From positions 186,001 to 250,000 of IMG/VR virus record IMGVR_UViG_3300036770_008729: a DNA stretch of 64,000 nucleotides; one strand, written 5' to 3'. The notes under the pieces are model-generated. The model was not told the origin of the DNA, searched no databases, and saw only the letters and a list, made by a program, of their open reading frames with translations. The translations under genes were made by a program, and so were the position numbers. Positions 2,572 through 62,654 of the stretch are shown here, in pieces (position 1 is the first letter of the stretch; every line of letters begins with the position of its first letter).

Positions 2572-3236
2572 CTTACGTTTATCTTAACATTTCTTGTATT
2601 AATCAATTCTTCTAGTTCATCTTTTCTAAATATCTTTTTGAAATATTCATTTTCTTTTTTTGGATCTACTAATTCCCATTCATTACCGTTTGAAGTTTGA
2701 TATTCATATTTTTCATTTCCATCTTCTATTTGTATATTTTTAGAAGATAGCTTTGAATAAAAGTTATTTATGTTTTCTAAAGCTTCATAAAGTTCAATAT
2801 CAGACCAACCCTGTGATATGACTTCACCATTTTTATCTTTAATCTCATCCCAGTATTGAAATAGTAGATAGATTGGGTTGATTGGTGGATTTGGAATAGT
2901 CTCTATATCAAAGGCCTCAGATCCATGAATAAACATAAATTTACAAGGCTTATTAATAAATGTTTGAAAGTCATCAGTATATTGTATGGGAGAAAGTCTC
3001 AATTTTATCGAGGTTAATGCATTAATAAAATCAGTTTTCTTTGCTAAGTCCTCTAAATCAATTTTAACAGAAAAGTCGGATTTTGGTAAATTAAACTTAT
3101 CGTGAAAATCCAATCTATTCATAGAAGATAATAGATCGTTCTTAAATACAGTCAATGATTCAGAAAGGTCAAATTGATTAAAAAAATCAATATTCAATGA
3201 TTCCGAAAACTTTTTATATGATTTGATGTATCTCAT
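2568..3236 (-). CDS. Hypothetical protein with CTS-like N-terminus
   Basis: MRYIKSYKKFSES; late-type motif upstream. Confidence 0.8.
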   Translation of the reverse strand: MRYIKSYKKFSESLNIDFFNQFDLSESLTVFKNDLLSSMNRLDFHDKFNLPKSDFSVKIDLEDLAKKTDFINALTSIKLRLSPIQYTDDFQTFINKPCKFMFIHGSEAFDIETIPNPPINPIYLLFQYWDEIKDKNGEVISQGWSDIELYEALENINNFYSKLSSKNIQIEDGNEKYEYQTSNGNEWELVDPKKENEYFKKIFRKDELEELINTRNVKINVS

Positions 3237-7700: not shown

Positions 7701-10487
7701 AACAGAATTGTGAAATGGTTTTACATGACTCCAATAATATTAGATGGAACAGTAAGTGGGTGGATACATTCAAATTGGTCTCCTGAAAATCCAACCACAC
7801 AAGACGGCACTATTGGATATGCAAATGGTGAAATAGAAAATGTAACACAGAATGGACAAGTTTATAATACACTCACACAACTAACAGTTACTAATACAGG
7901 TAATAACACTGGATATAATGGAAATACAACCCCTTTACCAAGAAACGGGAATAAAAGGACACTTACAGTAGAAATTGGAACTGGTAATGGTAATCCAGCA
8001 GGTCTGTGGAAGAATTCAACAACCTCTATACCTATTCAGAGGGCTCAGGATTCAGCATTCAATAGTTTTCAGATAAGAATAACAACACCAAATAATCCAA
8101 ATGGTGAGATTATTGATCCTGCTCAAGTCTTCAACGACCAATTGAAGACCTCTAAACCTTTTGTAAATGTTCCCGGTACAAAATATGGACATGGAAGTAG
8201 TGAATCACCACAATCAATAGGAATTATTGAAAGATTTATGTTAACCGAATTTGACACTGAATCATACTATATAATTGAGGGTATTTTACCAAGTATTGCG
8301 GATGAATTGTTGGGAGGATCAACACAAAGTTCTGGTGGTGCAGGCGGTGCTGGTGGTGCAGGCGGTGGCGGATTTTATAAACTCCCAGATGCAATTGGTG
8401 CAATTAAGGTTTTTATTAGTTTTTTAGTAGATATATTTTCTAAACTTATACCGAACATTAAAAAACTATTGAAGCTATTAAAAGACCCTTTAGGTTTTAT
8501 AACAGATATAGTAGCTGAAAAGCTAGGAGAAGCTTTTCCATTTCTATCACCAGAAGCATTTGATACATTCAAATCAGCTGCTAAACTATCAAAAAATGCA
8601 GCTGCCTCTGGTGGAACAGGTGCATCAGTTATTTCTGGATCTGCGAATTTAGGCCAACCACCAACAACACCAACTCCCGGTTCAGTAGCTGGACAAACAG
8701 GAAATCAAATAAATAATGCTACTAACAACGCTTCTGGTCAAGTCAATAGTCTAAATTCCTCATCAAGTAATTCCGTAAGTGGTGCTACCAACAGAGCTAA
8801 TGAAAAAAAATCTCAACTTATAAAAAAAGTTGAAAATCGTATAAAATCTTCTAAGTTAAACGGTGTTGTCTTTGTGGACAAACAACCAAAACTTCGTTCT
8901 GTTTTAGATGGTGTTGGAACAATTCCTTTTGAATTATTTGGTATAGATTTATCTTTTGGAATGGAGTTGAACATGAGTAAATTACCTGAAGGAACTCCAT
9001 TAAAATTAGTTTTTCCGAGTAATTTAACTTTATCTAAGTTATCATCAAACTCTGACACAGAAGCAAACAAAAATGCAGACAAAGATAATAATAACTCACT
9101 TTTAAGTGATAATCTAACGAAACCAAGAACAACAGTTGGTGAAGCTGGAACTCAAAATACTCTTCCCAACGGAACACCATTAAATTCTAATGATTACAAA
9201 ATACTTGATATAAAATACTCAACAGGTGAATTTGTTGCTGGTGTGGATTACAACTACATCTACATAACTAAGGATGTTGAAAATCTATTAGCTGAAGCAG
9301 ATGAGTTAGCAAAGAAAGAAACCGCTGAAGACTTAGGAAAGGCTCAAGAAAAACTTGAGGCTGCTAAAAAATTAGACCCACAAAATAAACTTATAGATGA
9401 GAAACTAAAAGATATAAAGAAAAAAAATGGATTCTTTAATTCTAAAACACAACCACTCCTTAAATTTTTACTGGGTTTCGTAACACTACCTTTAAAAATT
9501 GTCTCGAAGATAATTCAATTTATTATGGATTTCTTTAAGTCATTAACAAACCCAGTGAAACTACCAGCAGCTTTAGCTAAATTTTTATCATTTCAATGGA
9601 TATTAGAATATTTTATTCCACCTGGACCACCAATTCCAGGACTATTGAAATTGGTTGGAATAAATTTCGATCCTACAAAGTTAGTTCAATGGACTGCTTT
9701 GTCAAATATTCCAAATCCTAAGAAGCTTATTCAGAATTTAAATGATAAGGTTGGACAAGCGAATAATGCATTAACTAGCTTAACTGGAGCAGCAACTGGT
9801 GCAGTGACTGGTGCAGCTGGGTCGGCAACCGGAGCAGTGACTGGTGCCGCTGGGGCAGCAACCGGAGCGGCAACTGGTGCAGCTGGAGCGGCAACCGGGG
9901 CAGCAAATGAATTATCAAATCAACTTAAAGTAGAACCACCACCTATACCACCAATTGATTTTCCTTGGCCGATGCCAGTTCCTAAAGGAGACCACTTGAT
10001 ACCAGACGATTTTGAATTAGCTGACCTTAATCAATTCATAAGTGTTCCATTTATGGCTAAATTACCTACATACACTGCTAGACAAATAAGAACATCGCCT
10101 AAAAATCCATTAAAAATATTATGGCCACCCCTGTGTCTAATAGAGAAAATTATTAACTCAATAATAGATTTTTTCTGGTCACTATTAGGTATAGAAGCGA
10201 TAATACCACCACCACATATAAAGATATGTAAGGCGATGAAAGATGAAACTCTTACACCGGAAGATCTACAAAAAATTTTGAATGGAGAAGAACCAAAGGG
10301 AGTTAAAAATCCACCTGATAGTAATGACCTAAGTGGACAGCCATCTGATTCAAATGATAATGCAGGAAGTGCCTTTATTTATGAAGTTACATTACCAGAT
10401 GGTCGAAAAATACAAGCATTGAATGAGGAAGACCTACAAAAATTTTTAGATGAAAATAAAGATTTTCAATACGATTATCAATTCTAA
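4743..10487 (+). CDS. 1914-aa putative virion structural protein with Ala/Gly/Thr repeats
   Basis: Long ORF; GAATGAA repeats near both ends; Asn/Thr/Gly-rich beta-type middle. Confidence 0.7.
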   Translation: MAIPAGFPLYPNGVWNVSFSFPGVPPLDKLSDISKSIDGKSPSLLLIPNVEFIQKVIEGDIGIGDSILKSAFTKNFTSPLTTGNEFVFKKLAELTKIDVSNIEKYTKPPQAPVNTSAATGAAGAATGAAGAATGAVNNLKSKSKFILPASEVKVSSEFDLNGIKGFEKALLKSIFETQKPYMEIAKLVVANISKAEDIVARILPLALPIGTPLNTKSAKPIGNAGDATRPKALGFGGGVEIKKAIAKLDALNKKGGETIVTPDGKAIRQTNSALGNAPLTASQSAEQTNFSNNNSPQSDIPPDGYSYSVISAIYSTGTFDPNINYEYTYIDVPADEDIGENDQGLNLNDDGDPYKGFKPDCIILGIFDSKGNPLNPLAQLDGYDNNGQKVQARNSQGALLTKAGWILDSPKWKFPSGVYQWPRYGTPTYRYKGTGTNLGQVISSKEKPAPNIVLDSIVGDWEIMKYDTIYPDAIPIKKNLLNNEDAIKGDPVIENFDPPEVTEYQNFFNDLIEFRLATTDGITPEDKAEARASVYPQINVPAHLENVFLYGQSKSSIYTPINVPDLPEKDNPYPDTLRYSMKPYKIYSAPAAADSRLRGVFGSRMDDRNGNVWVDPEADYQAKIIRVDPTTKIKYTKPGQSEPIVAEIQAFVKNNLILKISDDRQFNIEVYKSTDSSVTNPQYNLYKQLTGLTAYNLENWNYNDNDGILNDRIGFSQSSDGGVGFGNNAPVKNDKNGYRITMWGERNTPYYDTVNGYLAYKEDANKYVEIEKQPDGSWTFQKFSFDVVAEGVAIEILRPTLESTGPQIDFLYQSYKSNPNYGYPVNGLTKTSQYNTFTSDPGPFPLSGSNSVTQTYIIKDSVTASNTITFENDLRNELKYANSIIFRRIIVDQAYTYASKDIELTVDNTKVDAIVYNPAKNETVVKFTTIFKSISGVNLRPIEKRHWIHQIKYNVLVADLFSRKIRIPVSGLYKLTEDKSIVEIQNNRIVKWFYMTPIILDGTVSGWIHSNWSPENPTTQDGTIGYANGEIENVTQNGQVYNTLTQLTVTNTGNNTGYNGNTTPLPRNGNKRTLTVEIGTGNGNPAGLWKNSTTSIPIQRAQDSAFNSFQIRITTPNNPNGEIIDPAQVFNDQLKTSKPFVNVPGTKYGHGSSESPQSIGIIERFMLTEFDTESYYIIEGILPSIADELLGGSTQSSGGAGGAGGAGGGGFYKLPDAIGAIKVFISFLVDIFSKLIPNIKKLLKLLKDPLGFITDIVAEKLGEAFPFLSPEAFDTFKSAAKLSKNAAASGGTGASVISGSANLGQPPTTPTPGSVAGQTGNQINNATNNASGQVNSLNSSSSNSVSGATNRANEKKSQLIKKVENRIKSSKLNGVVFVDKQPKLRSVLDGVGTIPFELFGIDLSFGMELNMSKLPEGTPLKLVFPSNLTLSKLSSNSDTEANKNADKDNNNSLLSDNLTKPRTTVGEAGTQNTLPNGTPLNSNDYKILDIKYSTGEFVAGVDYNYIYITKDVENLLAEADELAKKETAEDLGKAQEKLEAAKKLDPQNKLIDEKLKDIKKKNGFFNSKTQPLLKFLLGFVTLPLKIVSKIIQFIMDFFKSLTNPVKLPAALAKFLSFQWILEYFIPPGPPIPGLLKLVGINFDPTKLVQWTALSNIPNPKKLIQNLNDKVGQANNALTSLTGAATGAVTGAAGSATGAVTGAAGAATGAATGAAGAATGAANELSNQLKVEPPPIPPIDFPWPMPVPKGDHLIPDDFELADLNQFISVPFMAKLPTYTARQIRTSPKNPLKILWPPLCLIEKIINSIIDFFWSLLGIEAIIPPPHIKICKAMKDETLTPEDLQKILNGEEPKGVKNPPDSNDLSGQPSDSNDNAGSAFIYEVTLPDGRKIQALNEEDLQKFLDENKDFQYDYQF
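5089..5148 (+). repeat. Coding tandem repeat (AATGAAGAATGA)
   Basis: gcaaccggagcagcaggt-type units. Confidence 0.8.
9783..9905 (+). repeat. Coding tandem repeat (GAATGAVT/GAAG)
   Basis: Same unit type as 5089-5148. Confidence 0.8.
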
Positions 10488-28227: not shown

Positions 28228-28908
28228 TTATTTACTTTTTCTAAAAGATTCGAAGTTTTTAACCCATTTTTTAGATTCTGTTGTAGACATTGATTTAACT
28301 ATACCTTCAAGCTCTAACAAAGTCTTTTTATAATCAGTGTGTAAGATTGCAGTTCCACCAGCCGATGTAAACTTCTCAACATATTTAGGTCTATCATCAA
28401 TTAATATGTCTGTTTTACCTTCAGCAGCTTTACCTTTATCAACTGTTATAATTACTTGGTCAACCATTCCTTCAAAATGTTCTTTTACCCAATCTTTCTT
28501 TTCAATAACAGATGGATTATTCAAATCATTTTCATCACCAACAGGCGCTGATAATATATTAGGTAATTTGCCAGTCAATTCCGCAGCCTTAGCAACCATT
28601 TCTTTTGCACCAGGCATTAGTGGTAAGTTTCTATAGAAACCAGGTTTTGCAGCTATACTAAAGACTTTAGAAGTATATTTATTGAAAGACTTTTTAAGCT
28701 CTTTAACTGGACTATTTGGATCTTTTTCTAATTCTGCCTTGAATTTAGTTTTGATATCATCATCAACTAATCCTTTGTAGTCTTGAAACTTGGTTTCAAT
28801 TAGATTGTCTAAATCGGCTCTTAGTTGTATTATCTCTGGATTTTTTTTAAGACCACCATCCATATCGGCTAAAACGCCATCTAAGTCAAAAAATATTCTT
28901 GTTTCCAT
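28228..28908 (-). CDS. HAD-family 5'(3')-nucleotidase (NT5C-like)
   Basis: FFDLDGVLAD and ILIDDRPKY motifs. Confidence 0.85.
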   Translation of the reverse strand: METRIFFDLDGVLADMDGGLKKNPEIIQLRADLDNLIETKFQDYKGLVDDDIKTKFKAELEKDPNSPVKELKKSFNKYTSKVFSIAAKPGFYRNLPLMPGAKEMVAKAAELTGKLPNILSAPVGDENDLNNPSVIEKKDWVKEHFEGMVDQVIITVDKGKAAEGKTDILIDDRPKYVEKFTSAGGTAILHTDYKKTLLELEGIVKSMSTTESKKWVKNFESFRKSK

Positions 28909-29408
28909 TATTTAAAATCTTCTTTTTTAATATCACCAATTGAGCCAAATGAATCAGCAAATCCAGGTGTTTTTTTATTCTCCACATTATTTGCAATAGT
29001 TATATGAAAATATCTTTCTGACTCAGGATTAGTTAAACCAAGTTGTTCATAGATTGAATCTACAAAAGATTTTATCTCTTCTTGATTTTGAACCGCAACT
29101 ACAAAACTTTTCTTTCCTTTTTCTGGTCTTTCCGCAAAGGTTGTTTGGCCTAATACAATTTTAGGCATTTCCATTTTTGGAAGTCCTTCTTTAAGTTTAT
29201 CTTTATTTTGTTTACAGTTAGCTATAGAAGTTAAGGTTATATGCAACTTATCTTCAGCTAAAGGAAAATAAGACTTAGCTTCTTCATTTCCCTCATAAAT
29301 ATTTTTAATTTCGGATTTAGTTGTGTTATCTAACTTTAGAAGAAGAGCCGCCTCAAAAACTATACAATTATCACCTGTAAAATCTTCATATAATTTTAAA
29401 TATTTCAT
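28908..29408 (-). CDS. 2H phosphoesterase with CTS-like N-terminus
   Basis: Two HxT motifs (LHITL, FHITI); MKYLKLYEDF. Confidence 0.75.
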   Translation of the reverse strand: MKYLKLYEDFTGDNCIVFEAALLLKLDNTTKSEIKNIYEGNEEAKSYFPLAEDKLHITLTSIANCKQNKDKLKEGLPKMEMPKIVLGQTTFAERPEKGKKSFVVAVQNQEEIKSFVDSIYEQLGLTNPESERYFHITIANNVENKKTPGFADSFGSIGDIKKEDFK

Positions 29409-30106: not shown

Positions 30107-31576
30107 TTATTTTATTATTGATACTTTATCTATTGTTAAATCCCCAGTATGTTTACCGTTATCTTTGTAAATGGTAATGTTATATTCAGCAGACGCTGGA
30201 ACCTCATACTCAAAAGTAAACTCTGGTCTTCCATTTTTATTTAACTTCCTACAACATCCCTTCTCACAAGACTTACCAGACATTTTATGGTCTGCTCCAA
30301 AGAAGTTCATAAATCCAGCGAATGTGGAATTTGTAGGGTTACAAACACCATTCTCGTTTACATAAACCTCATAAACACCTTTTGGAACTTTTGTAAAACT
30401 AACAACAACTTCTAACTTTACCTTTTTGGTTGAAGTTAGGTTGATTTGAGTTAAGCCAAGAACTTTGATACCGGTGGTTATCTTACCACTTACTTTAGTT
30501 CCAGGTGTTGATTGTGCAAATAACTTCGGTTCTACCTCATCCATCAATCTAACTTCTTTTATTTTAACAGGAGTGTCATCAAAATCATAATCCATAGTGT
30601 AGATAATATCCAATGCCTCTTCTAAAGAATAAACTACTTTCTCACCATTCTCATTGAAGAAAACATAAGGCCACTCTACTTCTTCTAACTGTTCTATTGT
30701 AACAGGTTGACCATTATTAGAATTGTGCCATTGTTGCCAAATACGGTCTATATTAGAATGATGTGTCCAAAAGATAGGATCGAAAGCAGCAGTTGGAACC
30801 CAACCCATAAGTCCAGTATTTGTGGTAGTTCCAGTAATTGAATTATTAAACTGTAAAGTTCCTGTTGTATCATTACCAGCACCAATGTAATCATGCATTG
30901 CACCGTGAGGAGCATTATTTATGTTAAGACAAAACATTTTATAATCAGTATAACTCATTATTTTTGTTAAGTCTAAAGATCTACTAATTTCACCAGATAC
31001 CGGCCATCCATCATTCAAACTATCATATCTAGCTTCTTCAAAAAGTGAAGAGTGTTTATCTCTAAATAAATCTGGAATACATCTATCTCTATCATTATTA
31101 TTTGTATAAGCCCAATAAGGAAGTGCAAAATCATTATATCCTGATAATTTTCTAACTATTTTTTCAAAGTGCCAGATATAAAGACGGTGCCAAACTAAAA
31201 AGTGTAATTTTTCTTTACCTGATGGAGTGTGAGTACAATTATCCCAACCATCCATTTTATCACCTACATTGTGATAAGCACCACACCATCGATTGTTTTT
31301 AATTGTATCAGGAACCCAGTGAATGGCACCTTGATAATACCAACTCAGGGGATCTTTACAATCTTTTTTTCTCATAATATCTAAAGCTTTGTTTAAGGCT
31401 AAAAGGTCGTTAATGGCTTCAGGTGAATTTGCATTTTTTCTTGTAAATCTTTGTTGTTCTGTTTGTTTCTCGTTATTACTACAAGAAAAAAGAAACATAC
31501 TAAAAACGATTAAGAAAAAGATAATAAGACCAATAAATAACTTTTTAAGGTCTTTGTAAGTAGTGAATCGATTCAT
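30107..31576 (-). CDS. Tyrosinase / polyphenol oxidase (type-3 copper), predicted lipoprotein
   Basis: IHW, CTH, FLVWHR, PHGAMH, DPIFWTHHSNIDRIW; LFSC lipobox-like. Confidence 0.9.
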   Translation of the reverse strand: MNRFTTYKDLKKLFIGLIIFFLIVFSMFLFSCSNNEKQTEQQRFTRKNANSPEAINDLLALNKALDIMRKKDCKDPLSWYYQGAIHWVPDTIKNNRWCGAYHNVGDKMDGWDNCTHTPSGKEKLHFLVWHRLYIWHFEKIVRKLSGYNDFALPYWAYTNNNDRDRCIPDLFRDKHSSLFEEARYDSLNDGWPVSGEISRSLDLTKIMSYTDYKMFCLNINNAPHGAMHDYIGAGNDTTGTLQFNNSITGTTTNTGLMGWVPTAAFDPIFWTHHSNIDRIWQQWHNSNNGQPVTIEQLEEVEWPYVFFNENGEKVVYSLEEALDIIYTMDYDFDDTPVKIKEVRLMDEVEPKLFAQSTPGTKVSGKITTGIKVLGLTQINLTSTKKVKLEVVVSFTKVPKGVYEVYVNENGVCNPTNSTFAGFMNFFGADHKMSGKSCEKGCCRKLNKNGRPEFTFEYEVPASAEYNITIYKDNGKHTGDLTIDKVSIIK

Positions 31577-33360: not shown

Positions 33361-34995
33361 ATGAAATATCTAAAACTATTTGAAGCTTTCGAATCGACTA
33401 TATTAAGTAAAACTTTATCTTTCATCAAAGATGAAGAGTCTAAGAAACAATTCATGTTTGCACTAGACAAGATTTGTTCTACAATTGATTATCCTAAATC
33501 TGAGTTAAAAGATGAATACTTTCAATACTTATCATTTTACCCAGCACTTAAACTAAGTGCTAAAACAGGTGATGAACCTTGTGAAGCTTTATCACGTGAT
33601 TCTTATCCAGACTATGCAGTTGATGGGGCAAAGTGTAAAGGAGGTAAAGTATTAAGAAAGTGGGGAGCAAGAACAAGAGAAGTTGAATGTAGTATATGTA
33701 AAGGAACTGGTGTTAAACCAAAGAAACCTGAAATTAAGTTAGTTAAGTTTTGGTTTTCAACAGAAGGTAAATATATTGCTGTTACAGCAGTTGATGGCTT
33801 AATAAGAAACACAACGACTTCATCAACCGCGAGAGGGTATTCTAAAGACTATCAAGATTATATAGTAGTTAACACCACTGAAGATTCTAGAGAACTACAA
33901 ACTGGAATGATAGTTAGAGTTACTATTAATGGAAGACCTACTATTTGTTATATTGTTAAAGATAGAAATACTTATCCATATGCAATACAAGATGAACACA
34001 GTGGATCCACACCAGATAACATACCTTCTAGAAACTGGAGGAATTTTGGACATAGTTCTTGGCACTTATCAAGAGGTGAATACAGAGGAACAATTGAAAT
34101 ACTTGAACCAAAAAGTAAAGAAGAGGTTATTGTAGAACCAAATCCTTATACTTGGAATGCAACGCTTAGCTTATCTGGTTATTCAGGTATGAAAGTAGAT
34201 ATTTATTCTGATGTTCAAGAAAAAATTAAGGATGCAAACTTTGCTATTGTTTTAGATTTCGGTAAGATGAAACAATCAGAATTCAAAACTACTTATTCAA
34301 CGAGAAGTGAAAGAGAAGAATCTAGAACTGGTGCATTAGCATTAGAGAAACCTGAAGATATAAAAGCAACTAACATTGAAAGATATATTAAAAGTTTATC
34401 TGATAAAGTTGCAAGTGGAGATGAATTAACAAAAGTAACAAGAGTTATTCCAAGATTAATGGGTGGAAGAAATATTTTGCTTTATATTGGTATGAATAGA
34501 AATCTTTCAACTATTGATAGTTTAGCTACACGACTTTATAGATTTATTACAGAAGATGAGGACAATAAAGAATACAATGCAAGAGAAATAGTAGCAACAA
34601 TAAAAAACTCATACAAACAAAATCTACAATTTACTACTGATTTAAATGAAGTTTTAGATGAAGTAAGAAAACAATTACAAAAACCAGGAAAAGAAGCTTA
34701 TTTATCAACATTTGACAAAATGTTAGAGATATCACAAAAGATAAATGATAAAGTATTTTCAACAGAAGTTAAATCTATTGAAGATATTGAATACATCTAT
34801 CAAAAATTGAGGACAATTCAAAATATGTTACAATCCAGTCGTAATCCAGCAAATAGATTGAGATACTTTATGGAAAGATTAAGTTATCTAACTACTGATA
34901 GATGTGTATCTAGAATTTTAGAAATTGACCAAGATGAAATACCAAGTATAATTGAAGGTCTAGAATCAATTGGAAGATTTGTTGAGAGAGTTTAA
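33361..34995 (+). CDS. Hypothetical protein with CTS-like N-terminus and CxxCxGxG Zn motif
   Basis: MKYLKLFEAFES; CSICKGTG. Confidence 0.8.
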   Translation: MKYLKLFEAFESTILSKTLSFIKDEESKKQFMFALDKICSTIDYPKSELKDEYFQYLSFYPALKLSAKTGDEPCEALSRDSYPDYAVDGAKCKGGKVLRKWGARTREVECSICKGTGVKPKKPEIKLVKFWFSTEGKYIAVTAVDGLIRNTTTSSTARGYSKDYQDYIVVNTTEDSRELQTGMIVRVTINGRPTICYIVKDRNTYPYAIQDEHSGSTPDNIPSRNWRNFGHSSWHLSRGEYRGTIEILEPKSKEEVIVEPNPYTWNATLSLSGYSGMKVDIYSDVQEKIKDANFAIVLDFGKMKQSEFKTTYSTRSEREESRTGALALEKPEDIKATNIERYIKSLSDKVASGDELTKVTRVIPRLMGGRNILLYIGMNRNLSTIDSLATRLYRFITEDEDNKEYNAREIVATIKNSYKQNLQFTTDLNEVLDEVRKQLQKPGKEAYLSTFDKMLEISQKINDKVFSTEVKSIEDIEYIYQKLRTIQNMLQSSRNPANRLRYFMERLSYLTTDRCVSRILEIDQDEIPSIIEGLESIGRFVERV

Positions 34996-45267: not shown

Positions 45268-45591
45268 ATGACATCCCAAGAAATCAAACTCTACGGCAGA
45301 CAAATAGTAGAATCAATCACCAAAAGCGATATACCATACACCGATATCAATAAATGTAAAGAATTTCATATCGATTTCTCATTTCCAAGCTGGTCAATAG
45401 GCAAAGGCACAAACCCTAATCATAATATACTCGGACACTCACATATAATACTAACCTGGAACGCAATGCCTCATAAAAAATCCAGCATAATATGGACTAA
45501 CCTAAAACAAATAAAAACAACTGAATTAAACTCAATTATAGAAGCAATTAAAAGAGATATAAAATTAAATACAATACTAATCCATAACTAA
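45268..45591 (+). CDS. Hypothetical protein with tag (KRDIKLNTIL)
   Basis: ORF track. Confidence 0.65.
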   Translation: MTSQEIKLYGRQIVESITKSDIPYTDINKCKEFHIDFSFPSWSIGKGTNPNHNILGHSHIILTWNAMPHKKSSIIWTNLKQIKTTELNSIIEAIKRDIKLNTILIHN

Positions 45592-46083
45592 AAACCATAA
45601 ATGAATAGGTACATAACTATTACAAATAACATCACCATTATCATTTAAATAAGATATACGACTATTTAACTTCGATACCAAATCATATACCCTAGATATC
45701 AACATATCCGTAGAACTAAAATTCTCCTTACTCAACATCTCCTGACTACCAAAATAATTCCAACCCCATAACACAACCGGCTTCATCTCATAATCAGATA
45801 TAACATTTAATATATGCTGAACTAAATCACCTCCTCTTAACGATTCATCTAAATCATTCCAACTCATAGAAGAATAATCACATGCAAATGAGACATCTAT
45901 CACCTTCTTTCCATAAATACTCTTTGGAATACTACCACTTACCATTATAGCAAATCTATGAGGCTCACCATTTAATAAAAATTCCTTTACTCCAATCTTA
46001 CTCTTTATTAAATCAGATAGTGGCCTTAACTCAGATGATTTTAAACCCGATTCAAATATTTTATACTCTTTTATATGTTTCAT
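45577..46083 (-). CDS. Hypothetical protein with CTS-like N-terminus
   Basis: MKHIKEYKIFES. Confidence 0.75.
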   Translation of the reverse strand: MKHIKEYKIFESGLKSSELRPLSDLIKSKIGVKEFLLNGEPHRFAIMVSGSIPKSIYGKKVIDVSFACDYSSMSWNDLDESLRGGDLVQHILNVISDYEMKPVVLWGWNYFGSQEMLSKENFSSTDMLISRVYDLVSKLNSRISYLNDNGDVICNSYVPIHLWFLVMD

Positions 46084-54446: not shown

Positions 54447-54508
54447 TTGTTTAATATTTTATTTTGGTTTCTGAAGTGAGAGATATTCTCCAAAAAAAGG
54501 TTTTTACC

Positions 54509-54569
54509 ATAATACAAATATAGGTATTTTATATAAGAAATACAAAAATCCGCTACGTTTTTTTGTATT
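54509..54569. repeat. Composite intergenic repeat R1 (minus-strand -33/-7 promoter plus palindrome)
   Basis: Near-identical to 54818-54879. Confidence 0.85.
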
Positions 54570-54576
54570 GTTAGAA

Positions 54577-54819
54577 TTATAACATTGCATGTGGGCAACT
54601 TAATTTATAGCACCATTCTTGTGCTTCTGAATAGTTTTTGCAGGGGATTAATTGGTGAGACTTTGCATTAACTACAAAATGTTCTTTATTAATTAGTATA
54701 TGTGTATATCCAACTACATCTTTCATAAGGTCAAATATAGTGAAAGGATCCCCATTGGGATGTAGGGTAATTTCAGCTTTAATATAATGACCGCTTTGAG
54801 GTGTGAGGAATTTTATCAT
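54577..54819 (-). CDS. Small hypothetical protein, probably leaderless
   Basis: TATATTTG 4 nt before ATG. Confidence 0.65.
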   Translation of the reverse strand: MIKFLTPQSGHYIKAEITLHPNGDPFTIFDLMKDVVGYTHILINKEHFVVNAKSHQLIPCKNYSEAQEWCYKLSCPHAML

Positions 54820-54915
54820 AATACAAATATAGGTATTTTATATAAGAAATACAAAAATCCGCTACGTTTTTTTGTATTAATAGGCACAAAAAAAGGAGAA
54901 AGTTTAATTTCTCCT
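54818..54915. repeat. Composite repeat R2 (promoter, palindrome, terminator)
   Basis: Shares segments with R1, R3 and R4. Confidence 0.85.
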
Positions 54916-54937
54916 CACTCATTGTTTTTCATTGAAT

Positions 54938-55477
54938 TTAAAAATTCAATTTAGGTTTTAAAATTGTTCCACCTTTCTGATTAGACTTCCAATCAGATGC
55001 TGAGCTATGTGTCTTATCTTTTTGTTTATCAAAACCAAAAGAGGTATATGAACTTTTAGCAGTCATACCAATTTTCGCCAAGTGTTCGAATTTTTCTTGA
55101 TCCATTTCACCCACAGTAATTATAACAGCCTTTATAATGCTTTTAGTTTCTTCACCAAAGTCTTGGAGATTCCTGTTGATTCCATCTCTTCTATCTTGAA
55201 AGTATTGTCGAGCTTCTAAATATGGAGTTCTTTCATCAAGCTTCACATCATTTGATACTTCATTTGTAAATACAAGACAAGCTGCTAAAAACTTTTTTTG
55301 TGTTGATTTATCTTCAATTGACTTTTCAATAGTATTTAGTGGTTTACTCATCTGATTCGCAACTGCTGTTGTTGAAACACCACCTAAAAGTGCAATACTT
55401 GCTAGTAGATTATGATACCAAGCTTCATTGATACTTTGATATTCATTATAATTTTTTACAAACTTCATCTTTTTCAT
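54938..55477 (-). CDS. CTS-type protein with TM-like segment (start MKKMKF at 55477)
   Basis: MKFVKNYNEYQSINE; late motif at about 55500. Confidence 0.75.
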   Translation of the reverse strand: MKKMKFVKNYNEYQSINEAWYHNLLASIALLGGVSTTAVANQMSKPLNTIEKSIEDKSTQKKFLAACLVFTNEVSNDVKLDERTPYLEARQYFQDRRDGINRNLQDFGEETKSIIKAVIITVGEMDQEKFEHLAKIGMTAKSSYTSFGFDKQKDKTHSSASDWKSNQKGGTILKPKLNF

Positions 55478-55522: not shown

Positions 55523-55572
55523 TTTTTTTGTATTTAATAGGCACAAAAAAAGGAGAAAGTTTAATTTCTCCT
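55523..55572 (-). terminator. Repeat R3 with minus-strand terminator aggagaaa-ttaaac-tttctcc-ttttttt
   Basis: Same hairpin in R2 and R4, each downstream of a minus-strand gene. Confidence 0.8.
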
Positions 55573-55591
55573 AATTTGTTTATCATTCTAA

Positions 55592-56110
55592 TTAACTCTT
55601 TTTTGTTAACCATTCTTTGTTAATACGCTCACGTTCACGATTCACATAATAGCGTTTGGTATATATATACTTTTCTCTTAATGACTCAGGTACTTTTGAA
55701 TATTCCACTTGAGTTTCAGGAAAAATTAATGAAGAATTTACTGATATTTCAGGTAAAGTTCTTAGCTGAGGTTTTACTAATTCTTTATTTACTTTTGATT
55801 CCCATTCACTATGATACTCCGACATTACTGATTCTGGTTCCATATCTTCTCTATACATAACATATAATTTTAATCTATATGAACCCATTTGCATAGAATC
55901 AGATATTGCAAAATTGACAGTTTTTTCATCATTAAGGTATAAATTTTCATTCTCATTTAAAGAATTAACAATATTAACTTTCCAACCATTTTTTTCTAAA
56001 TGTAATTGTAAGCCTTCTATAAAATCTTTCATTTTATGATCAATGTGTTCAGAAGTCTTTTGTATAGATAACCAGTTTTCAAATAACTTAATATACTTTA
56101 GATTTTTCAT
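55592..56110 (-). CDS. Hypothetical protein with CTS-like N-terminus
   Basis: MKNLKYIKLFEN. Confidence 0.75.
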   Translation of the reverse strand: MKNLKYIKLFENWLSIQKTSEHIDHKMKDFIEGLQLHLEKNGWKVNIVNSLNENENLYLNDEKTVNFAISDSMQMGSYRLKLYVMYREDMEPESVMSEYHSEWESKVNKELVKPQLRTLPEISVNSSLIFPETQVEYSKVPESLREKYIYTKRYYVNRERERINKEWLTKKS

Positions 56111-56157: not shown

Positions 56158-56275
56158 ATATAGGTATTTTATTTAAGAAATACTCACTTCGTGAGAGTGT
56201 CTTTAGACACTACAAAAATCCGCTACGTTTTTTTGTATTAATAGGCACAAAAAAAGGAGAAAGTTTAATTTCTCC
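56158..56275. repeat. Composite repeat R4 with about 30 bp double-hairpin insertion
   Basis: R2-like with ctcac-ttc-gtgag and agtgtc-ttta-gacact inserted. Confidence 0.8.
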
Positions 56276-56295
56276 CTTCATATTTTTATTATTTT

Positions 56296-57606
56296 TTATT
56301 GTTCATCTGATAGAGAGTAGTTGATTTCATCCAGAATTGAATCGGTTGGGAATTTTTCTCCTCTTTTATTATAAAAGAAACCATCTCTAAATTTTACCAA
56401 TTCGGAATCATCATTCATATTATCAGGTAATACACAATCATTCCATAATTCGATAATTTGATTAGGTGTAGTAGTTTTGCCAATTTCCACTCTTAATACT
56501 TCGAGTTCTTCTGGAATTTCAATTTGGGGTTCTTGCTCTGATTTAGCTCCTTGTTCTGCTTTTATACGAGCTTCTATTTCTTTGGCATGATCTTCTAAGT
56601 TCTTTGCTGAGGCATCTGCCTTTCTAATAGGATTGCCTTTTTCGTCCTTAATTAGATTGCCGTCTTTATCTAAAAGAAAGTCTTCTTCATATTCTGGTAG
56701 CAACCCTAACTTTTTACGTTGTTCTAAATCTTTTTTATCTCTTTCTCTAATACCAGCAGCGGCTCTTTTATAAGTCTCTGGATTTAATTCTTCATTAACG
56801 AATGATTCAAATAATTTTAGGTATTTCATATTATTTTTACTTTCAGCAACTGATTTTTCAGACTCATCAATTACTCTTTTAAGTTCAGCTGTATTATCAA
56901 CACTAACAACTTCATCAAATCCTTCTTTTGATAAAACATCTTTTATTTTTTCTTCATCAAAAGGAATGCCTTTATCATCTTGTAAGTCATATGATGTAAA
57001 CATTCTATCAAATGCAGCAGGTGGTATAGTTTTAGATTTACCTTTAGCTTTCATTTCTTCTGATCTTTTAGCTGCCATTTTTTTGATAATTTCTTCAGCT
57101 CCTTTGAAGTTAAAAACAACTGCTACTTTATGATATTCGCCTTCAACACCTTCAATAACTTTAAGTGCTCCTTTTCTTGAACCAGAGTTCATATTGGTCA
57201 TATCGACTACAATATTTTCTTTTCCTTTACCTTCGGCAATTCTTTTGTTAAATATATCTTGAATTTTACCGTTAGCTTCTAAAACTCTATCATAAGAAAG
57301 TGGTGCCCAAGTCATATAAGCTGGTGATTTAATAACGGTGCCATATTTTTCATTTTTATCACCTTCTTTTTCAACATCTTTAATGGGTAATGAGAAAAGG
57401 TCATCATATGTCCAACCATACTCTGCATACTCTTCAGCAACTTTTTCGACAATATCATCTCTATTTATTACAAATGGTTGTATTTCACCAAATTTGGTTT
57501 TTATCCAAGTTGATTTACCTACAGATGGAGGTCCAATAAGAACATATATTGTTTTATCTTTAACTTCTTCACCTTCAAATACTCTGAAATTTTTAATATT
57601 CCTCAT
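56296..57606 (-). CDS. P-loop kinase (AAA_33 / PNK-like) with N-terminal and internal CTS-like motifs
   Basis: GPPSVGKSTW, INRDDI, VVDMTNM..SR; MRNIKNFRVFE and MKYLKLFESFVNEE. Confidence 0.8.
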   Translation of the reverse strand: MRNIKNFRVFEGEEVKDKTIYVLIGPPSVGKSTWIKTKFGEIQPFVINRDDIVEKVAEEYAEYGWTYDDLFSLPIKDVEKEGDKNEKYGTVIKSPAYMTWAPLSYDRVLEANGKIQDIFNKRIAEGKGKENIVVDMTNMNSGSRKGALKVIEGVEGEYHKVAVVFNFKGAEEIIKKMAAKRSEEMKAKGKSKTIPPAAFDRMFTSYDLQDDKGIPFDEEKIKDVLSKEGFDEVVSVDNTAELKRVIDESEKSVAESKNNMKYLKLFESFVNEELNPETYKRAAAGIRERDKKDLEQRKKLGLLPEYEEDFLLDKDGNLIKDEKGNPIRKADASAKNLEDHAKEIEARIKAEQGAKSEQEPQIEIPEELEVLRVEIGKTTTPNQIIELWNDCVLPDNMNDDSELVKFRDGFFYNKRGEKFPTDSILDEINYSLSDEQ

Positions 57607-57697: not shown

Positions 57698-57810
57698 TAG
57701 TCAGGACAGGAATCGAACCTGCATGTGGGCCTTGTGTGTATTTCAACTATACTGCGGGTTTATCCACTCCGTTTAACTATTCGGTGCGTTTACCATTTCG
57801 CTACCTGACT
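57698..57810 (-). ncRNA. tRNA-scaffold RNA A (113 nt)
   Basis: AGTCAGG/CCTGACT acceptor, GCG/CGC D-stem, GCAGG-TTCGATT-CCTGT T-arm, no canonical anticodon arm. Confidence 0.75.
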
Positions 57811-58457: not shown

Positions 58458-58563
58458 TAGTCAGGACAGGACTCGAACCTATAATCTGAATAACCTATAT
58501 CATCTTGATTTATTACCAATGATATTTTGTATTCACGCTTTAACCCAATTTCGCCACCTGACT
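58458..58563 (-). ncRNA. tRNA-scaffold RNA B (106 nt)
   Basis: Same acceptor; ATAGG-TTCGAGT-CCTGT T-arm; elongated helix in place of anticodon arm. Confidence 0.75.
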
Positions 58564-58712: not shown

Positions 58713-58883
58713 TAGTCAGGACAGGACTTGAACCTGTATGTTTAGTTTTTACACTTTCACTTTTGATCAGATACTTGTGAAGGATGTTAATCAGACTTCG
58801 GTGAGATCAAATCACCTACACATCTACTCTAAACTTAACCTACCCTTTAGGATTTTCACGTCTACTAATTCCGTCACCTGACT
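58713..58883 (-). ncRNA. tRNA-scaffold RNA C (171 nt)
   Basis: Same acceptor; covarying D-stem ACG/CGT; ACAGG-TTCAAGT-CCTGT; multibranch insert. Confidence 0.75.
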
Positions 58884-59223: not shown

Positions 59224-59345
59224 TAGTCAGGACAGGATTCGAACCTGTAAGGTAACATTCGGTTTCAAGACTCTCCTCTATACCGATCAGAGGATGTAGT
59301 TACCACTTTACTCGTCTAATGCGTCTACCATTCCGCCACCTGACT
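59224..59345 (-). ncRNA. tRNA-scaffold RNA D (122 nt)
   Basis: Same acceptor; GCG-GAATGGTAGA-CGC Leu/Ser-type D arm; ACAGG-TTCGAAT-CCTGT. Confidence 0.75.
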
Positions 59346-59350
59346 ATGAA

Positions 59351-59653: not shown

Positions 59654-59674
59654 ATATATTCAAAGAACTATTTG

Positions 59675-59750
59675 TCGTTAGGGTAGGACTCGAACCTACA
59701 ATCTTTCGGGATTTTCACCCGAACGCTCTATCAAATTGAGCCACCTAACT
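59675..59750 (-). tRNA. tRNA-Phe-like element with damaged anticodon arm (pseudo-tRNA E)
   Basis: AGTTAGG acceptor (A1-G72 mismatch), GCTC/GAGC D-stem, TTCGGG-TGAAAAT-CCCGAA, GTAGG-TTCGAGT-CCTAC. Confidence 0.6.
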
Positions 59751-59788: not shown

Positions 59789-59808
59789 TTTATTCTGCTT
59801 TTAAACAA

Positions 59809-59835
59809 TACAAAAAAACGTAGCGGATTTTTGTA
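59809..59835. repeat. Inverted copy of the TACAAAAATCCGCTACGTTTTTTTGTA palindrome
   Basis: Reverse complement of copies at 54541, 54850 and 56211. Confidence 0.85.
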
Positions 59836-59839
59836 TTGT

Positions 59840-60640
59840 TTAAATTGGTAGATTTACTTTGGATAATATTTGGTTCGAAACATGAGTGTAAATTTCAGTA
59901 GTTTTTACATTTGAGTGACCTAATATTTTCTGAATTACTCTTAAATCAGTACCATTTTCCAATAGATTTGTTGCACAACTATGTCTCAATTGGTGAATGT
60001 GATATTTTTCACCCAAATATTTTTTAACAATTTGATTACAGCTACCAGAACTATATTGTAAACTATTTTGACCATTGAAAAGGTATTCTTTTGGTCTATA
60101 TTCTTTAAAATATTCTCTAAGTAATTCTAATATTTTCTGGGATAGGGGTAAGACTCTATCTTTTCTACCTTTAGCATTTTTAATATGAATAATCATTCTT
60201 TTGGAATCGATATCTTCAATTTTAAGGTTAATTACTTCCGATACTCTTAATCCGACTGAATAAGTTAAAGATAATATCGTTTTATGTTTAAGATTAGTAA
60301 TTTTAGATAATTGTTCTTTAATGTAATCACCATCAATAACCTGTGGTAACTTCTTCTCAGATTTGGGTCTTTTGAAACTAACCTTATCATATTTCTTATT
60401 AAGTCCGAATTTGTAGAGGAAACGGATTGCGTTAATAACCTGATTTTGTTGTGAAACAGAAGTAAAACTATAAGTATCTAAATATGATTGAAAATCATTA
60501 GATGTGAGTCTAGTTGGTGAAATTTTTATTGTAGCTAAAAATTGATTAATATAATGGAGATAGGATTTTATTGTCCTATCTGAGTAATTTAAATACTTCA
60601 ATTTTTGATTACAAATTTCGTAATAATCTGTTTTTTTCAT
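59840..60640 (-). CDS. Tyrosine recombinase (integron-integrase-like N-domain, XerD-like catalytic domain)
   Basis: GLRVSE, NAKGRKDR, HQLRHS, LGH, TEIYTHV; catalytic set intact. Confidence 0.92.
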   Translation of the reverse strand: MKKTDYYEICNQKLKYLNYSDRTIKSYLHYINQFLATIKISPTRLTSNDFQSYLDTYSFTSVSQQNQVINAIRFLYKFGLNKKYDKVSFKRPKSEKKLPQVIDGDYIKEQLSKITNLKHKTILSLTYSVGLRVSEVINLKIEDIDSKRMIIHIKNAKGRKDRVLPLSQKILELLREYFKEYRPKEYLFNGQNSLQYSSGSCNQIVKKYLGEKYHIHQLRHSCATNLLENGTDLRVIQKILGHSNVKTTEIYTHVSNQILSKVNLPI

Positions 60641-60692
60641 ATGTGAAATATATATGAAATAAGAAAAAAAGTTTAATTATAGATATAATCTA

Positions 60693-60699
60693 GTTAGTG
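60693..60699 (+). other. attI-like crossover core G|TTAGTG
   Basis: Complementary to CACTAAC of the first attC; no palindromic arm on the recombinase side. Confidence 0.65.
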
Positions 60700-61282: not shown

Positions 61283-61346
61283 TTGTTCTAAATTTAAGTT
61301 TTGTAATTTTAAGTCCGCAACTAAATATACCTGCAAAACGTTATGT
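61216..61346 (+). other. attC-like site 2 (131 bp)
   Basis: GTATAAC-a-20 bp arm...arm-aaaac-GTTATGT. Confidence 0.8.
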
Positions 61347-61415
61347 GTAAGTGTTCCGTTCATCTTACTAATCAACATTTTGGTTGAAAATTTTAAAAGA
61401 AAAATCCCACACACA

Positions 61416-62246
61416 TTAAATGATTTTAATATATTTTGGTGGTATATTATCATATGTGAAAAAACCACCCTTGAATCTCAAATCTTTATATAAAGATAAT
61501 CCTTTGAAGTTTTCTATTCTTAAATTAACATATTCACCACCTTTATCACCAACTAACTCTTGTTTTATTGAAGACATCCATTCTTCATTAGGCGATAAAT
61601 AAATTCTCTCAGGATAAAAACTTCTAGTATTTTTTGTTTTTGGTATTAAACCATATTTCATTATCTTATCTAAATTTTTGGAGTCGGTTGTGTGATAAAG
61701 ATATTCACCTTCAAAATTAACTTTGTCATCATAATTTGGTTCTATCATTATGGATATTCTATCACTAGATATTAAGGTTTTTTCTATATCATTTTTATCA
61801 GTTAGTTTTTCACCTGGTTTAAGATTTACGACAGATATAAAATATCCCATATTATCTATTAATGATATAAGACCAAGTGATAATTCCTTATTATTAAAAT
61901 CTGTAAATATTGATATATCACCATAATTAAATTCACTTATTTGTTTTTCTAAATCCGAGATAGTCTTGTCTATATCAACCCCTCCTTTAATTAGACTTTT
62001 TGTTAATGAATCATTTTTGTCTTTATAGCCTTTTAACATTCTATTCATCGTAAATTTATCGGTGATGATTTGATAATATGGTGAATTCACATCTTCGCCA
62101 AAATTAGATTTTTTATTTAGACCATTTCCAATAAAGAAATTATCTAATTTTTTTATAACAATATCAAGTTTATCTGATTTTAGTGTTTCGTTAAGTAAAT
62201 TAAATTTTCTAAAACTGTTTATATATTTTCTCATTTCCTTACTCAT
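61416..62246 (-). CDS. Cassette 3 ORF: CTS-type protein with C-terminal Tpt1/ART-like domain
   Basis: MRKYINSFRKFNLLNE; YLYHTT...I.KYGLIP...RIYLS. Confidence 0.7.
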   Translation of the reverse strand: MSKEMRKYINSFRKFNLLNETLKSDKLDIVIKKLDNFFIGNGLNKKSNFGEDVNSPYYQIITDKFTMNRMLKGYKDKNDSLTKSLIKGGVDIDKTISDLEKQISEFNYGDISIFTDFNNKELSLGLISLIDNMGYFISVVNLKPGEKLTDKNDIEKTLISSDRISIMIEPNYDDKVNFEGEYLYHTTDSKNLDKIMKYGLIPKTKNTRSFYPERIYLSPNEEWMSSIKQELVGDKGGEYVNLRIENFKGLSLYKDLRFKGGFFTYDNIPPKYIKII

Positions 62247-62359
62247 AGTATTTCTTTTATATATAAATATTGAGAATTAAAACTTCCACCCTTCTTTTTC
62301 TTTTAAAATTTTTGTTTAGTTCTCCGAATGAAATTTAGTAGTTAATAACCCACACCTAC

Positions 62360-62413
62360 ACATAACAAATGATAAACAACATTAAAACGATTGTTTATCA
62401 TTAGTCGTTAGAA
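62360..62413 (+). other. attC-like site 3 (54 bp)
   Basis: ACATAAC-aa-atgataaacaa...ttgtttatcat-tagtc-GTTAGAA. Confidence 0.85.
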
Positions 62414-62420
62414 GCAATGC

Positions 62421-62654
62421 CTAATCAAGCGTTACTTCACTTTTATAAAGTCCGATGTTAAATCGGTATGTTTCGTTCTTTGAGAATGATACAAAAATAC
62501 TTCCTCCGTATTGGTTTATATTTGTTGGTTCTCTGCCAAGCGATACATTTTTATAAGTTTCTGCTAAGTATTTTTGTACTTCCATAGGCACAGCTTCTAA
62601 CAGCAAGTTAGCGTTATTGCCTATTTCGTTGGTATTCGATGTTTCATTTTTCAT
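62421..62654 (-). CDS. Cassette 4 ORF
   Basis: Starts inside its attC. Confidence 0.7.
   Translation of the reverse strand: MKNETSNTNEIGNNANLLLEAVPMEVQKYLAETYKNVSLGREPTNINQYGGSIFVSFSKNETYRFNIGLYKSEVTLD

Follow-up and report, generated by a model that had tools for sequence, protein, structure and literature searches.

A mobile gene cassette for a predicted ADP-ribosyltransferase-like enzyme in an integron-like array of a huge phage

Integrons are bacterial gene-capture platforms, and the locus described here raises the question of whether a very large phage runs a platform of this kind for itself, and what sort of gene it carries. The window analysed, 64,000 nucleotides in all, comprises bases 186001-250000 of the 281,114-bp virus record IMGVR_UViG_3300036770_008729 (~30% G+C), and contains an array of small open reading frames (ORFs) beside a gene for a tyrosine recombinase. 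The subject is one unit of that array, cassette 3 (61340-62407), which a preliminary description made from the sequence alone had read as a phage-native gene with a late promoter and a packaging tag. The reading preferred here, to which we give a probability of about 60%, is that it is a phage integron-like cassette, moved by a recombinase and furnished with a 5' module of its own, which encodes an NAD+-using enzyme of the ADP-ribosyltransferase (ART) superfamily, the gene being native to the clade.

Within the integron-like array of this huge phage, 61340-62407 is a discrete gene cassette that has moved recently, as comparison of arrays shows. A 4.1-kb contig from another sample (L002) matches window positions 61340-62418 at 99.9% identity; past its ..CACATAAC end it runs directly into an integrase gene 71% identical to that of the window, and it has different cassettes on the other side. 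The same cassette is found in three further arrays (L085/86, L087/88 and L092) at ~95% DNA identity (85-96% for the protein), where the identity begins exactly at GTTATGTGTAGG and stops at CACATAAC, with differing hairpins on both sides and other neighbours. Assemblies of freshwater, algal and sediment metagenomes hold the cassette with 0-4 differences, their contigs breaking at 61339 and in the repeated 5' leader, and at the left end the identity with L002, L085, L086, L092 and contigs of runs X4 and X7 stops at 61339/61340. When all arrays were compared against each other, the units that they share were found mostly to start at xTAAC|G and to end at ..TAAC (the bar marks the break), cassettes being exchanged between arrays as independent units at these core boxes. 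It is this comparison between arrays that establishes, at the level of sequence, both the mobility of the cassette and its break points. The limits 61341-62407 of the preliminary description correspond exactly to the unit running from G|TT to G.

One contig of run X10 joins 62401 to 61338 with CGG between them, that is, the hairpin end of the cassette back to its other end. Such a joint could arise from a cassette excised as a circle, from copies in tandem, or from a pair of adjacent cassettes whose end repeats are identical, and it was not counted as evidence.

The cassette had been described as richer in A+T than its neighbours, and this is so: the G+C content of its ORF is 24.5%, compared to 28.5-40.3% in the seven nearest cassette ORFs (40.3, 33.7, 33.8, 35.7, 30.3, 28.5 and 33.7%), which places it in the lowest 2.3% of the 217 ORFs of at least 150 residues in the 281-kb record (median 29.9%). 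The G+C content at third codon positions (GC3), 16.6%, is ordinary for the backbone (median 19.4%), cassettes 1, 4 and 5 having values of 31-35%. The complementary ends are also as described, with 13 of 14 positions pairing between GTTATGTGTAAGTG (61340-61353) and CACCTACACATAAC (62353-62366); a chance partner of such complementarity 800-1400 nt away is found for ~0.1% of window positions (~1 in 1000). A second block of 17 nt lengthens the complementarity, and both blocks pair in a fold of the joined ends, which together with the 41-nt hairpin form a palindrome of ~190 nt (folding free energy, dG, -37 kcal/mol; z-score -7). Folded by itself as DNA, the hairpin (62367-62407) gives dG values of -9.0 and -9.5 kcal/mol and z-scores of -4.0 and -4.6 for the two strands. 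Both strands fold about equally well, for the hairpin and for the joined ends alike; an apparent strand bias in a count of hairpins (246 vs 47) was rejected as an artefact of offset and wobble settings.

This hairpin is common to the window and L002, and other hairpins stand in its place in L085, L087 and L092. A hairpin that has been swapped in three other arrays implies breaks at both boxes. The 5' leader DNA, GTTATGTGTAGGTGTGG...AAAATTTTAAAAGAAAAA, also precedes other ORFs in L018, L024, L034, L039, L054 and L092. Assembler depth over 62292-62479 (5' leader plus hairpin) is ~10-40 times that of the cassette body in three unrelated metagenomes (runs X4, X7 and X10), and the leader is therefore a high-copy repeat common to many cassettes.

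The agent that moves the cassette is most likely the adjacent XerA/IntI-like recombinase, which would act at short ..TAAC|G / G|TTA.. boxes, with the two cassette ends and the hairpin together serving as one long attC-like imperfect palindrome. Among NCBIfam models the recombinase matches XerA_Arch with 196.7 bits and the integron integrase TIGR02249 with 163.7 bits, both under the cut-offs; the TIGR02249 match (cut-off 265) comes in two stretches, the protein having 266 residues against 315 model positions. Its best relatives in the PDB are the archaeal XerA (4a8e, 5hxy), and then IntI4 (2a3v), aligned over residues 18-178 only. Given that the IntI4 alignment ends at residue 178, and that the integron models match in two pieces below threshold, the protein is without the IntI-specific insertion.

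Homologous recombinases (52-92% identity) are encoded at 80 loci on viral contigs of up to 362 kb. Many of these loci have runs of small co-oriented ORFs 5' of the recombinase gene, separated by ..TAAC-stem-loop-stem-GTTA.. sites of 50-142 nt, up to 13-14 per locus. All 60 hairpin sites in the most frequent class face the same way with respect to the integrase, as expected of attC-type sites, which are imperfect inverted repeats having RYYYAAC...GTTRRRY cores; an ungapped stem scan gave only 14 sites, being too strict because of bulges. At the attI-like junction, read on the coding strand, the integrase-proximal cassette ends in ..CACTAAC and is followed directly by TAGATTATAT. The same break, ..TAAC|TA(G/T)(A/C)TTATAT, is found in L002, L010/L015, L015/L025, L017/L018, L033, L041/L070 and L054/L055, and the block common to the surroundings of the integrase starts right after the last TAAC, at TA(G/T)(A/C)TTATAT.

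On the plus strand of the window, which was the frame used in the preliminary description, the cassettes have the textbook form G|TT....R''-hairpin-G, and the ORFs are then antisense to the usual direction. All of the array ORFs are on the strand of the recombinase gene and upstream of it, and hence are read toward it, rather than outward from a Pc promoter as in integrons. Because the ORF of cassette 3 faces the recombinase gene, no integron-style common promoter could be used. The hairpin sits 5' of each ORF, and some junctions (e.g. 61330-61345) are hairpin-less, the R'' box of one cassette adjoining the R' box of the cassette after it.

The terminal inverted repeats are ~80 nt long, and such repeats would also be expected if the unit moved without the tyrosine recombinase, either as a miniature inverted-repeat transposon or through homing or gene conversion by a neighbouring endonuclease. 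A copy of the gene outside arrays (L089, described below) does lie beside a T5orf172/MUG113 endonuclease-like gene, and the block of 96.6% identity ends exactly at the borders of the gene body. However, the array copies are all in one orientation, in tandem with units bearing the same TAAC/GTTA boxes, and always 5' of the recombinase gene; no transposase or target-site duplication was seen; and the first cassette joins a conserved attI-like sequence. Movement of this kind is accordingly considered improbable, and movement by the recombinase is preferred.

The signals in front of the ORF are those that had been noticed, and it is their interpretation that changes. The promoter-like motif is present on the minus strand as TTTATATATA (62258-62267), which lies 11 nt upstream of the start codon and differs from TTAATATATA at one position. 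The record has 87 copies of the 9-mer core of the motif, TAATATATA, of which 76 are correctly oriented and within the 80 nt that precede an ORF. The N-terminus likened to a capsid-targeting sequence is indeed a leader-like peptide, MSKEMRKYINSFRKFNLLNE being a shifted copy of a start motif found throughout the record. This motif, M-K-[YH]-[LI]-K-x-[FY]-[EN]-x-F, is found on 63 record ORFs, with Glu within the next four residues in 49 of the 63, the background frequency of Glu being 6.7%. Among record ORFs of at least 80 residues, ~19% have the peptide motif and ~39% the DNA motif (with at most one mismatch), the figures inside arrays being 4% and 13%; since the motifs are rare there, cassette 3 stands out among the cassettes.

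The leader and promoter of cassette 3 differ from the backbone version. AATATTTATATATAAA, followed after 9-13 nt by ATG-MSKEMR.[HQY]I[DN]..[KR]N[FW], heads 13 different ORFs of 47-276 residues, all of them inside arrays (11 related loci plus the record), and cassette 3 is the sole instance in the record. The sharing of this 5' module with other cassettes is plain from the alignments. In L070 the peptide M-S-K-E-M-R is kept while being encoded by Ser and Arg codons of other codon families, which points to selection at the level of the peptide. Contrary to what had been proposed, the promoter and tag did not simply arrive along with a native gene: the copy in L089 has another leader and another promoter, and the pair is a standard 5' module of cassettes and not a relic of a backbone gene. 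The related proposal that the array is co-adapted to the phage stands in one respect, since expression signals of the phage type are found on some of the cassettes.

A second leader family, M..[DE]L[RK][KQ]FI[KA]TTIREYLNE, heads two ART-PolyVal cassettes and one PARP-like cassette. Related arrays and contigs encode a canonical Tpt1 (L092:2891-3451; PF01885, E=7e-42, on an array-bearing contig), two ART-PolyVal proteins (L092:7128-7619 and L026:953-1474; E=1.5e-11 and 6e-19) and a PARP-like protein (L014:1016-1564). Leader-bearing cassettes are apparently enriched in ART-superfamily enzymes.

Some further occurrences of these signals may be recorded here. At L087:9930-10000 the promoter-plus-start region is tandemly duplicated (..ATATATAAACTAAAATACTATGAGTAAAGAAATGAGAAG twice). 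Window ORFs with the start motif include those at 1321-1827, 2568-3236, 28908-29408, 33361-34995, 45577-46083 and 56296-57606. The last of these (minus strand) encodes an AAA_33 kinase-like protein of 436 residues that has the motif twice, at residue 1 and again internally as MKYLKLFESF (~260), as might result from the fusion of two genes or from an internal start.

One explanation for the leader is that it is a capsid-targeting sequence, as in the internal proteins and Alt of phage T4: the gene would be transcribed late, its product packed into the head, cut by the prohead protease after ..NE and injected, and the array would be a library of virion-delivered effectors. Selection on the leader as a peptide would suit this explanation, as would its predicted structure, a floppy helix and linker outside the fold, and the excess of Glu after the start motif would fit a Glu-cutting protease. 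Phage LR756501, which has a homologue of the cassette protein, gives sub-threshold matches (24 bits) to S77, the T4 prohead protease family; the leader-bearing cassettes seem enriched in ART-superfamily enzymes including ART-PolyVal, and it has been argued that ARTs are often packaged in virions (PMC9503650). On the other hand, a motif carried by about a fifth of the longer ORFs is too common to mark head proteins only. The ORFs that it heads in LR756501 include those for a cytidine deaminase/CCA-adding enzyme fusion, a GNAT acetyltransferase and a hydrolase-like protein, and the promoter motif is likewise found ahead of a varied set of genes (a Dam methylase gene, genes for glycine-rich proteins and many unknown ones). 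Distant homologues of the cassette protein lie among genes of replication and nucleotide metabolism (DnaB, ribonucleotide reductase, NT5C, TROVE) and not among head genes, and the S77 matches are below the cut-off, with none in the 281-kb record. We regard late transcription and packaging as doubtful for these reasons. The wider proposal that the leader is a signal for head packaging and ejection, so that the product of whatever gene is captured behind the module would be delivered by the virion as an early effector, with ART-type enzymes as the preferred cargo (the present family, ART-PolyVal and PARP-like), is doubtful to the same degree. A search of the literature found no prior description of the N-terminal motif, nor of integrons in huge phages.

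Here, AlphaFold and Foldseek were used to examine the protein itself. The model, built with 28 homologues, has a pLDDT (predicted local distance difference test) of 86.7, and in it residues 1-21 form a low-confidence helix and linker detached from the body. Met5 (62232-62234) is a possible alternative start, and homologues of 272 residues begin there. The matches in the PDB are striking in their consistency: the 18 top ones are all Tpt1/KptA (E 4.5e-6 to 1e-3, probability 1.0), followed by DarT1 and then by the A chains of pertussis, typhoid, heat-labile (LT-IIb) and cholera toxins. The AlphaFold database gives DUF4433 (best cluster, E=5.6e-7, template-modelling score, TM, 0.51 normalised by hit), RNA 2'-phosphotransferase and DUF952, and the ESM Atlas gives a PF01885 cluster. 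The structural match concerns the NAD+ lobe, approximately residues 173-276, which has the fold of the corresponding lobe of Tpt1/KptA. In sequence the matches are weak and fall within residues 178-275 (NCBIfam RNA 2'-phosphotransferase, E=0.003, residues 181-274; phrog_5470, E=0.0016). The Tpt1/ART-like domain of the preliminary description is therefore there, with a clear match in predicted structure and a weak one in sequence.

The family has 92 close homologues and 861 representative clusters at E<=0.001, one relative being fused to a NUDIX domain; a KptA-Nudix fusion has been reported in a giant virus (PMC9503650). Among 28 diverse members His185, Gly199, Pro202, Arg214 and Asp255 are invariant, and Tyr184, Pro212, Tyr216 and Asn267 nearly so. 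The model has the split β-sheet NAD+-binding fold of the ART superfamily, whose members have a conserved His (or Arg) on strand 1 and an aromatic residue or His on strand 2, and His185 and Tyr216 are in keeping with this. Modelled alone (pLDDT 93.9), the N-terminal domain has no match in the PDB or the AlphaFold database, and a likeness to nitroreductases (best E 0.03, TM 0.3) was rejected as noise.

It could be proposed that the protein is a genuine RNA 2'-phosphotransferase of the Tpt1/KptA kind, with a part in the repair or splicing of tRNA, as for the KptA of other jumbo phages. Tpt1/KptA is after all the nearest structural relative; relatives outside arrays lie near genes for Thg1, CCA-adding enzyme and TROVE proteins; and there are tRNA genes with insertions 2-4 kb from the array. 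However, it is the NAD+ lobe alone that matches. The catalytic tetrad of Tpt1 is Arg-His-Arg-Arg, of which three residues reportedly lie in the N-terminal RNA lobe, as Banerjee et al. are said to have described in 2019. Residues 1-170 of the cassette protein have no Arg or His conserved across 28 and 19 homologues, the only invariant Arg being Arg214 in the NAD+ lobe, so that the Arg-His-Arg of the N-terminal lobe is absent. At the second signature position, where Tpt1 has His, the cassette family has Tyr. The bit scores are also far under the family cut-offs: NCBIfam NF002014, which describes the whole protein, gives 17.4 bits against 239, over profile positions 97-179 only. The canonical Tpt1 on the related array-bearing contig L092 demonstrates what a real Tpt1 looks like in such a setting. 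A 2'-phosphotransferase is thus held to be of low probability. By its predicted structure the protein is an ART-superfamily enzyme from the neighbourhood of Tpt1 and DarT, not a Tpt1, and most likely an NAD+-using ADP-ribosyltransferase. Two read-length contigs from a freshwater metatranscriptome are identical to the ORF, which is weak evidence of transcription.

Homologues are found both inside and outside arrays. Those outside are 46-82% identical and lie on long phage-like contigs, without TAAC/GTTA flanks where the DNA was inspected (L089). The L089 copy (7716-8543) is beside the T5orf172/MUG113 endonuclease-like gene (7338-7685, minus strand) and near genes for Thg1 and FKBP; its G+C content is 23.9% against 31.5% for the contig, as if it had been inserted there too. 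The L090 copy adjoins a 5'-nucleotidase (NT5C) gene and the L091 copy a sigma factor gene, while another non-array copy is beside genes for DnaB, ribonucleotide reductase and TROVE. An ORF of 528 residues in LR756501 has the homologue as its N-terminal half and lies near the deaminase/CCA-adding enzyme fusion. Cellular homologues lacking the tag and promoter were not found: a scan of 185,579 species genomes by pattern gave a single match, on a contig with 26% G+C that is likewise an array of this sort, in a metagenome-assembled genome binned as Saccharofermentanales. The scan is insensitive to distant relatives, and rarity in cellular genomes is indicated by it rather than proven.

The exchange between positions can be seen by comparing L087 (array) with L089 (non-array). 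They have 96.6% DNA identity exactly from the LNETLKS codons to the KYIE codons, and their leaders, promoters and flanks are unrelated. Because the identity is limited to the gene body, the body and the 5' module are separable. There is no second member of the family in the 281-kb record, and given the non-array homologues elsewhere the gene is taken to be native to the clade and, in this phage, present as a cassette only. Overall, the gene body appears to be native to the huge-phage clade and to have moved recently between backbone and array positions.

The replicon is treated as a huge phage because the relatives of the cassette protein in the phage collection are the largest phages known: LR756501/LR756503 (735 kb), LR756502, LR756508 and Lak phages. 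Over 20.8 kb the locus matches a metagenome contig of 598,435 bp at 100% identity and is continuous within that contig, and the 281-kb record is probably a trimmed part of a larger huge-phage genome. An array of bacterial origin misjoined to phage DNA, whether through host contamination or as an assembly chimera, could be suspected from the source label 'provirus' that the record carries, from the 34-40% G+C of some cassettes, and from the copy in the contig binned as Saccharofermentanales. Yet both flanks bear the phage-wide promoter and N-terminal motifs, and the binned contig is a 26% G+C array of the same kind. The preliminary description had argued against simple host contamination, and in this it is upheld by the 80 related integrase loci on viral contigs, by the continuity within the 598-kb contig and by the homologues in huge phages. 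A misjoined bacterial array is very improbable indeed.

Taken together, these observations are most readily explained if cassette 3, moved as described by the recombinase, is expressed from its own 5' module, in which AATATTTATATATAAA would act as the promoter and be followed by a leader of ~20 residues, MSKEMR..I..F..F..NE. The protein without its leader would then consist of an α/β domain of unknown kind and an ART-fold NAD+ lobe closest to those of Tpt1/KptA and DarT, and the enzyme most likely ADP-ribosylates nucleic acid, or less likely protein, early in infection. Its role may be that of a host-takeover or counter-defence enzyme.

Several points weigh against this explanation. A Pfam search of the ORF gave no match at E<0.1, PF01885 included, and, with no known match for the N-terminal domain, the target of the enzyme is a guess. 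Carry-over of DNA could account for the RNA contigs. In the window and in L002 the hairpin accompanies the cassette, whereas L085, L087 and L092 have the cassette without it, and none of the 80 integrase-linked loci of the viral-contig scan carries the ART-like gene within 10 kb. Finally, the record bears the 'provirus' label and has no recognisable structural genes (Pfam searches of it gave no terminase, capsid or sheath match), so that its assignment to a phage rests on relatives.

Table 1. Coordinates within the window of the features of cassette 3 and of the adjoining recombinase locus.
Feature	Coordinates	Strand	Description
Tyrosine recombinase, 266 residues	59840..60640	-	XerA/IntI-like, presumed cassette recombinase; Pfam Phage_integrase (5e-39) and Phage_int_SAM_4
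attI-like junction between recombinase gene and first cassette	60641..60693	.	crossover at G60693|TT
Left cassette end, R'-type box	61340..61353	+	G|TTATGTGTAAGTG; 3' end of coding strand reads ..CACTTACACATAAC
Inner block of terminal inverted repeat, GAAAATTTTAAAAGAAAAA	61386..61404	.	partner 62295-62314; from alignment of both ends
ORF, 276 residues	61416..62246	-	leader 1-20; α/β domain ~22-170; ART-fold NAD+ lobe ~173-276
Promoter-like element, AATATTTATATATAAAAG	62254..62271	-	contains TTTATATATA; kept in L002, L085, L087 and L092; putative promoter
Cassette 5' leader DNA	62295..62352	.	common to many other cassettes; metagenome repeat
Right inverted repeat CACCTACACATAAC, R''-type box	62353..62366	+	13/14 complementary to 61340-61353
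Hairpin, attC-like part	62367..62407	.	12-bp stem, ATGATAAACAAC/ATTGTTTATCAT region; ends G62407|TT

Some other features of the window deserve mention. Just 3' of the recombinase gene there is a tRNA cluster on the minus strand (57698-57810, 58458-58563, ~58715-58880, ~59225-59350 and 59675-59750). Rfam calls two tRNAs of 113 and 106 nt in it, lengths which imply that they carry insertions, and two further stretches with the same tRNA-like 3' end (GTCAGGACAGGA(C/T)T(C/T)GAACC) have longer insertions and are called by neither Rfam nor ARAGORN. ARAGORN calls just the tRNA gene at 59674-59750 (anticodon AAA), and it found no tRNA gene adjoining the recombinase gene in 21 related loci. Intergenic repeats of 40-75 bp, with copies 87-100% identical, occupy gaps between genes on the upstream side of the tRNA cluster, as well as the region directly 3' of the recombinase gene (54502-54941, 55523-55595, 56211-56293 and 59804-59845). 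An ORF of 489 residues at 30107-31576 (minus strand) has a central tyrosinase domain (PF00264, E=2.6e-26), which is unusual for a phage.

Compared with known systems, the protein has in common with Tpt1/KptA (PF01885; PDB 6e3a, 9ldi, 8tfi) the C-terminal NAD+-binding ART lobe (~173-276), including the motifs LYH.T...I...GL.P and the C-terminal strand ..Y(T)..NIPP..I. It differs in that the N-terminal RNA lobe, with its Arg-His...Arg phosphate clamp, is replaced by an unrelated domain of ~150 residues, and in having the motif ..R-I-Y-L.. where Tpt1 has ..V-H-L-S. With the DarT/DUF4433 DNA ADP-ribosyltransferases (PDB 8baq) it has in common the ART fold, of the same branch, but no DarG-like macrodomain partner adjoins it, and it is phage-encoded rather than part of a bacterial toxin-antitoxin pair. 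ART-PolyVal and other polyvalent virion proteins (PF18760; PMC5512222, PMC9503650) are likewise ART-superfamily counter-defence candidates of large phages, and sister cassettes encode ART-PolyVal; cassette 3, however, has no PF18760 match, and its product is a small two-domain protein, not a polyvalent fusion. The resemblance to T4 Alt and the internal proteins with a capsid-targeting sequence (PMC9503650) lies in a phage ART and a short N-terminal helical leader followed by Glu, but Alt belongs to another ART branch, and here a related motif is on one fifth of the ORFs. The cassette adds to the superfamily an uncharacterised and mostly viral branch (861 clusters), plausibly of host-takeover or anti-defence enzymes. 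If the leader were a targeting signal, the array would account for the diversification of early-acting proteins in huge phages.

Like integrons (class 1, Vibrio, and the phage CALINs of Qi et al. 2023, PMC9892861), the array consists of tandem promoter-poor small ORFs with imperfect palindromes having ..AAC and GTT.. cores, in G|TT...G units, the start of a cassette being complementary to its own R'' box; there is a tyrosine recombinase with an attI-like junction at one end, and the same cassette is found in different arrays. Unlike them, it has a recombinase that is closest to XerA and without the IntI-specific insertion, its ORFs face the recombinase gene, its hairpins are 5' of the ORFs, with some junctions hairpin-less (R'' abutting R'), and a subset of its cassettes carries a promoter and leader-peptide module of its own. 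The phage integrons reported so far, in 21 phages, are fragments, integrase-less attC clusters and, in a few cases, complete integrons on a prophage or phage-plasmid (PMC9892861). The present system belongs to a huge-phage replicon and is conserved across a clade rather than being a stray fragment, and a clade-wide phage integron system of this design is absent from that account. A single cassette proves directly, by comparison, that very large phages of one clade operate a capture system of their own: a 1-kb unit is found in at least five arrays from several ecosystems, beside recombinases only 71% identical, and its gene body has been exchanged with the backbone. The system departs from the textbook integron in two ways, in its short Xer-like recombinase, and in its recombinase-facing ORFs with their own promoter and standard leader.

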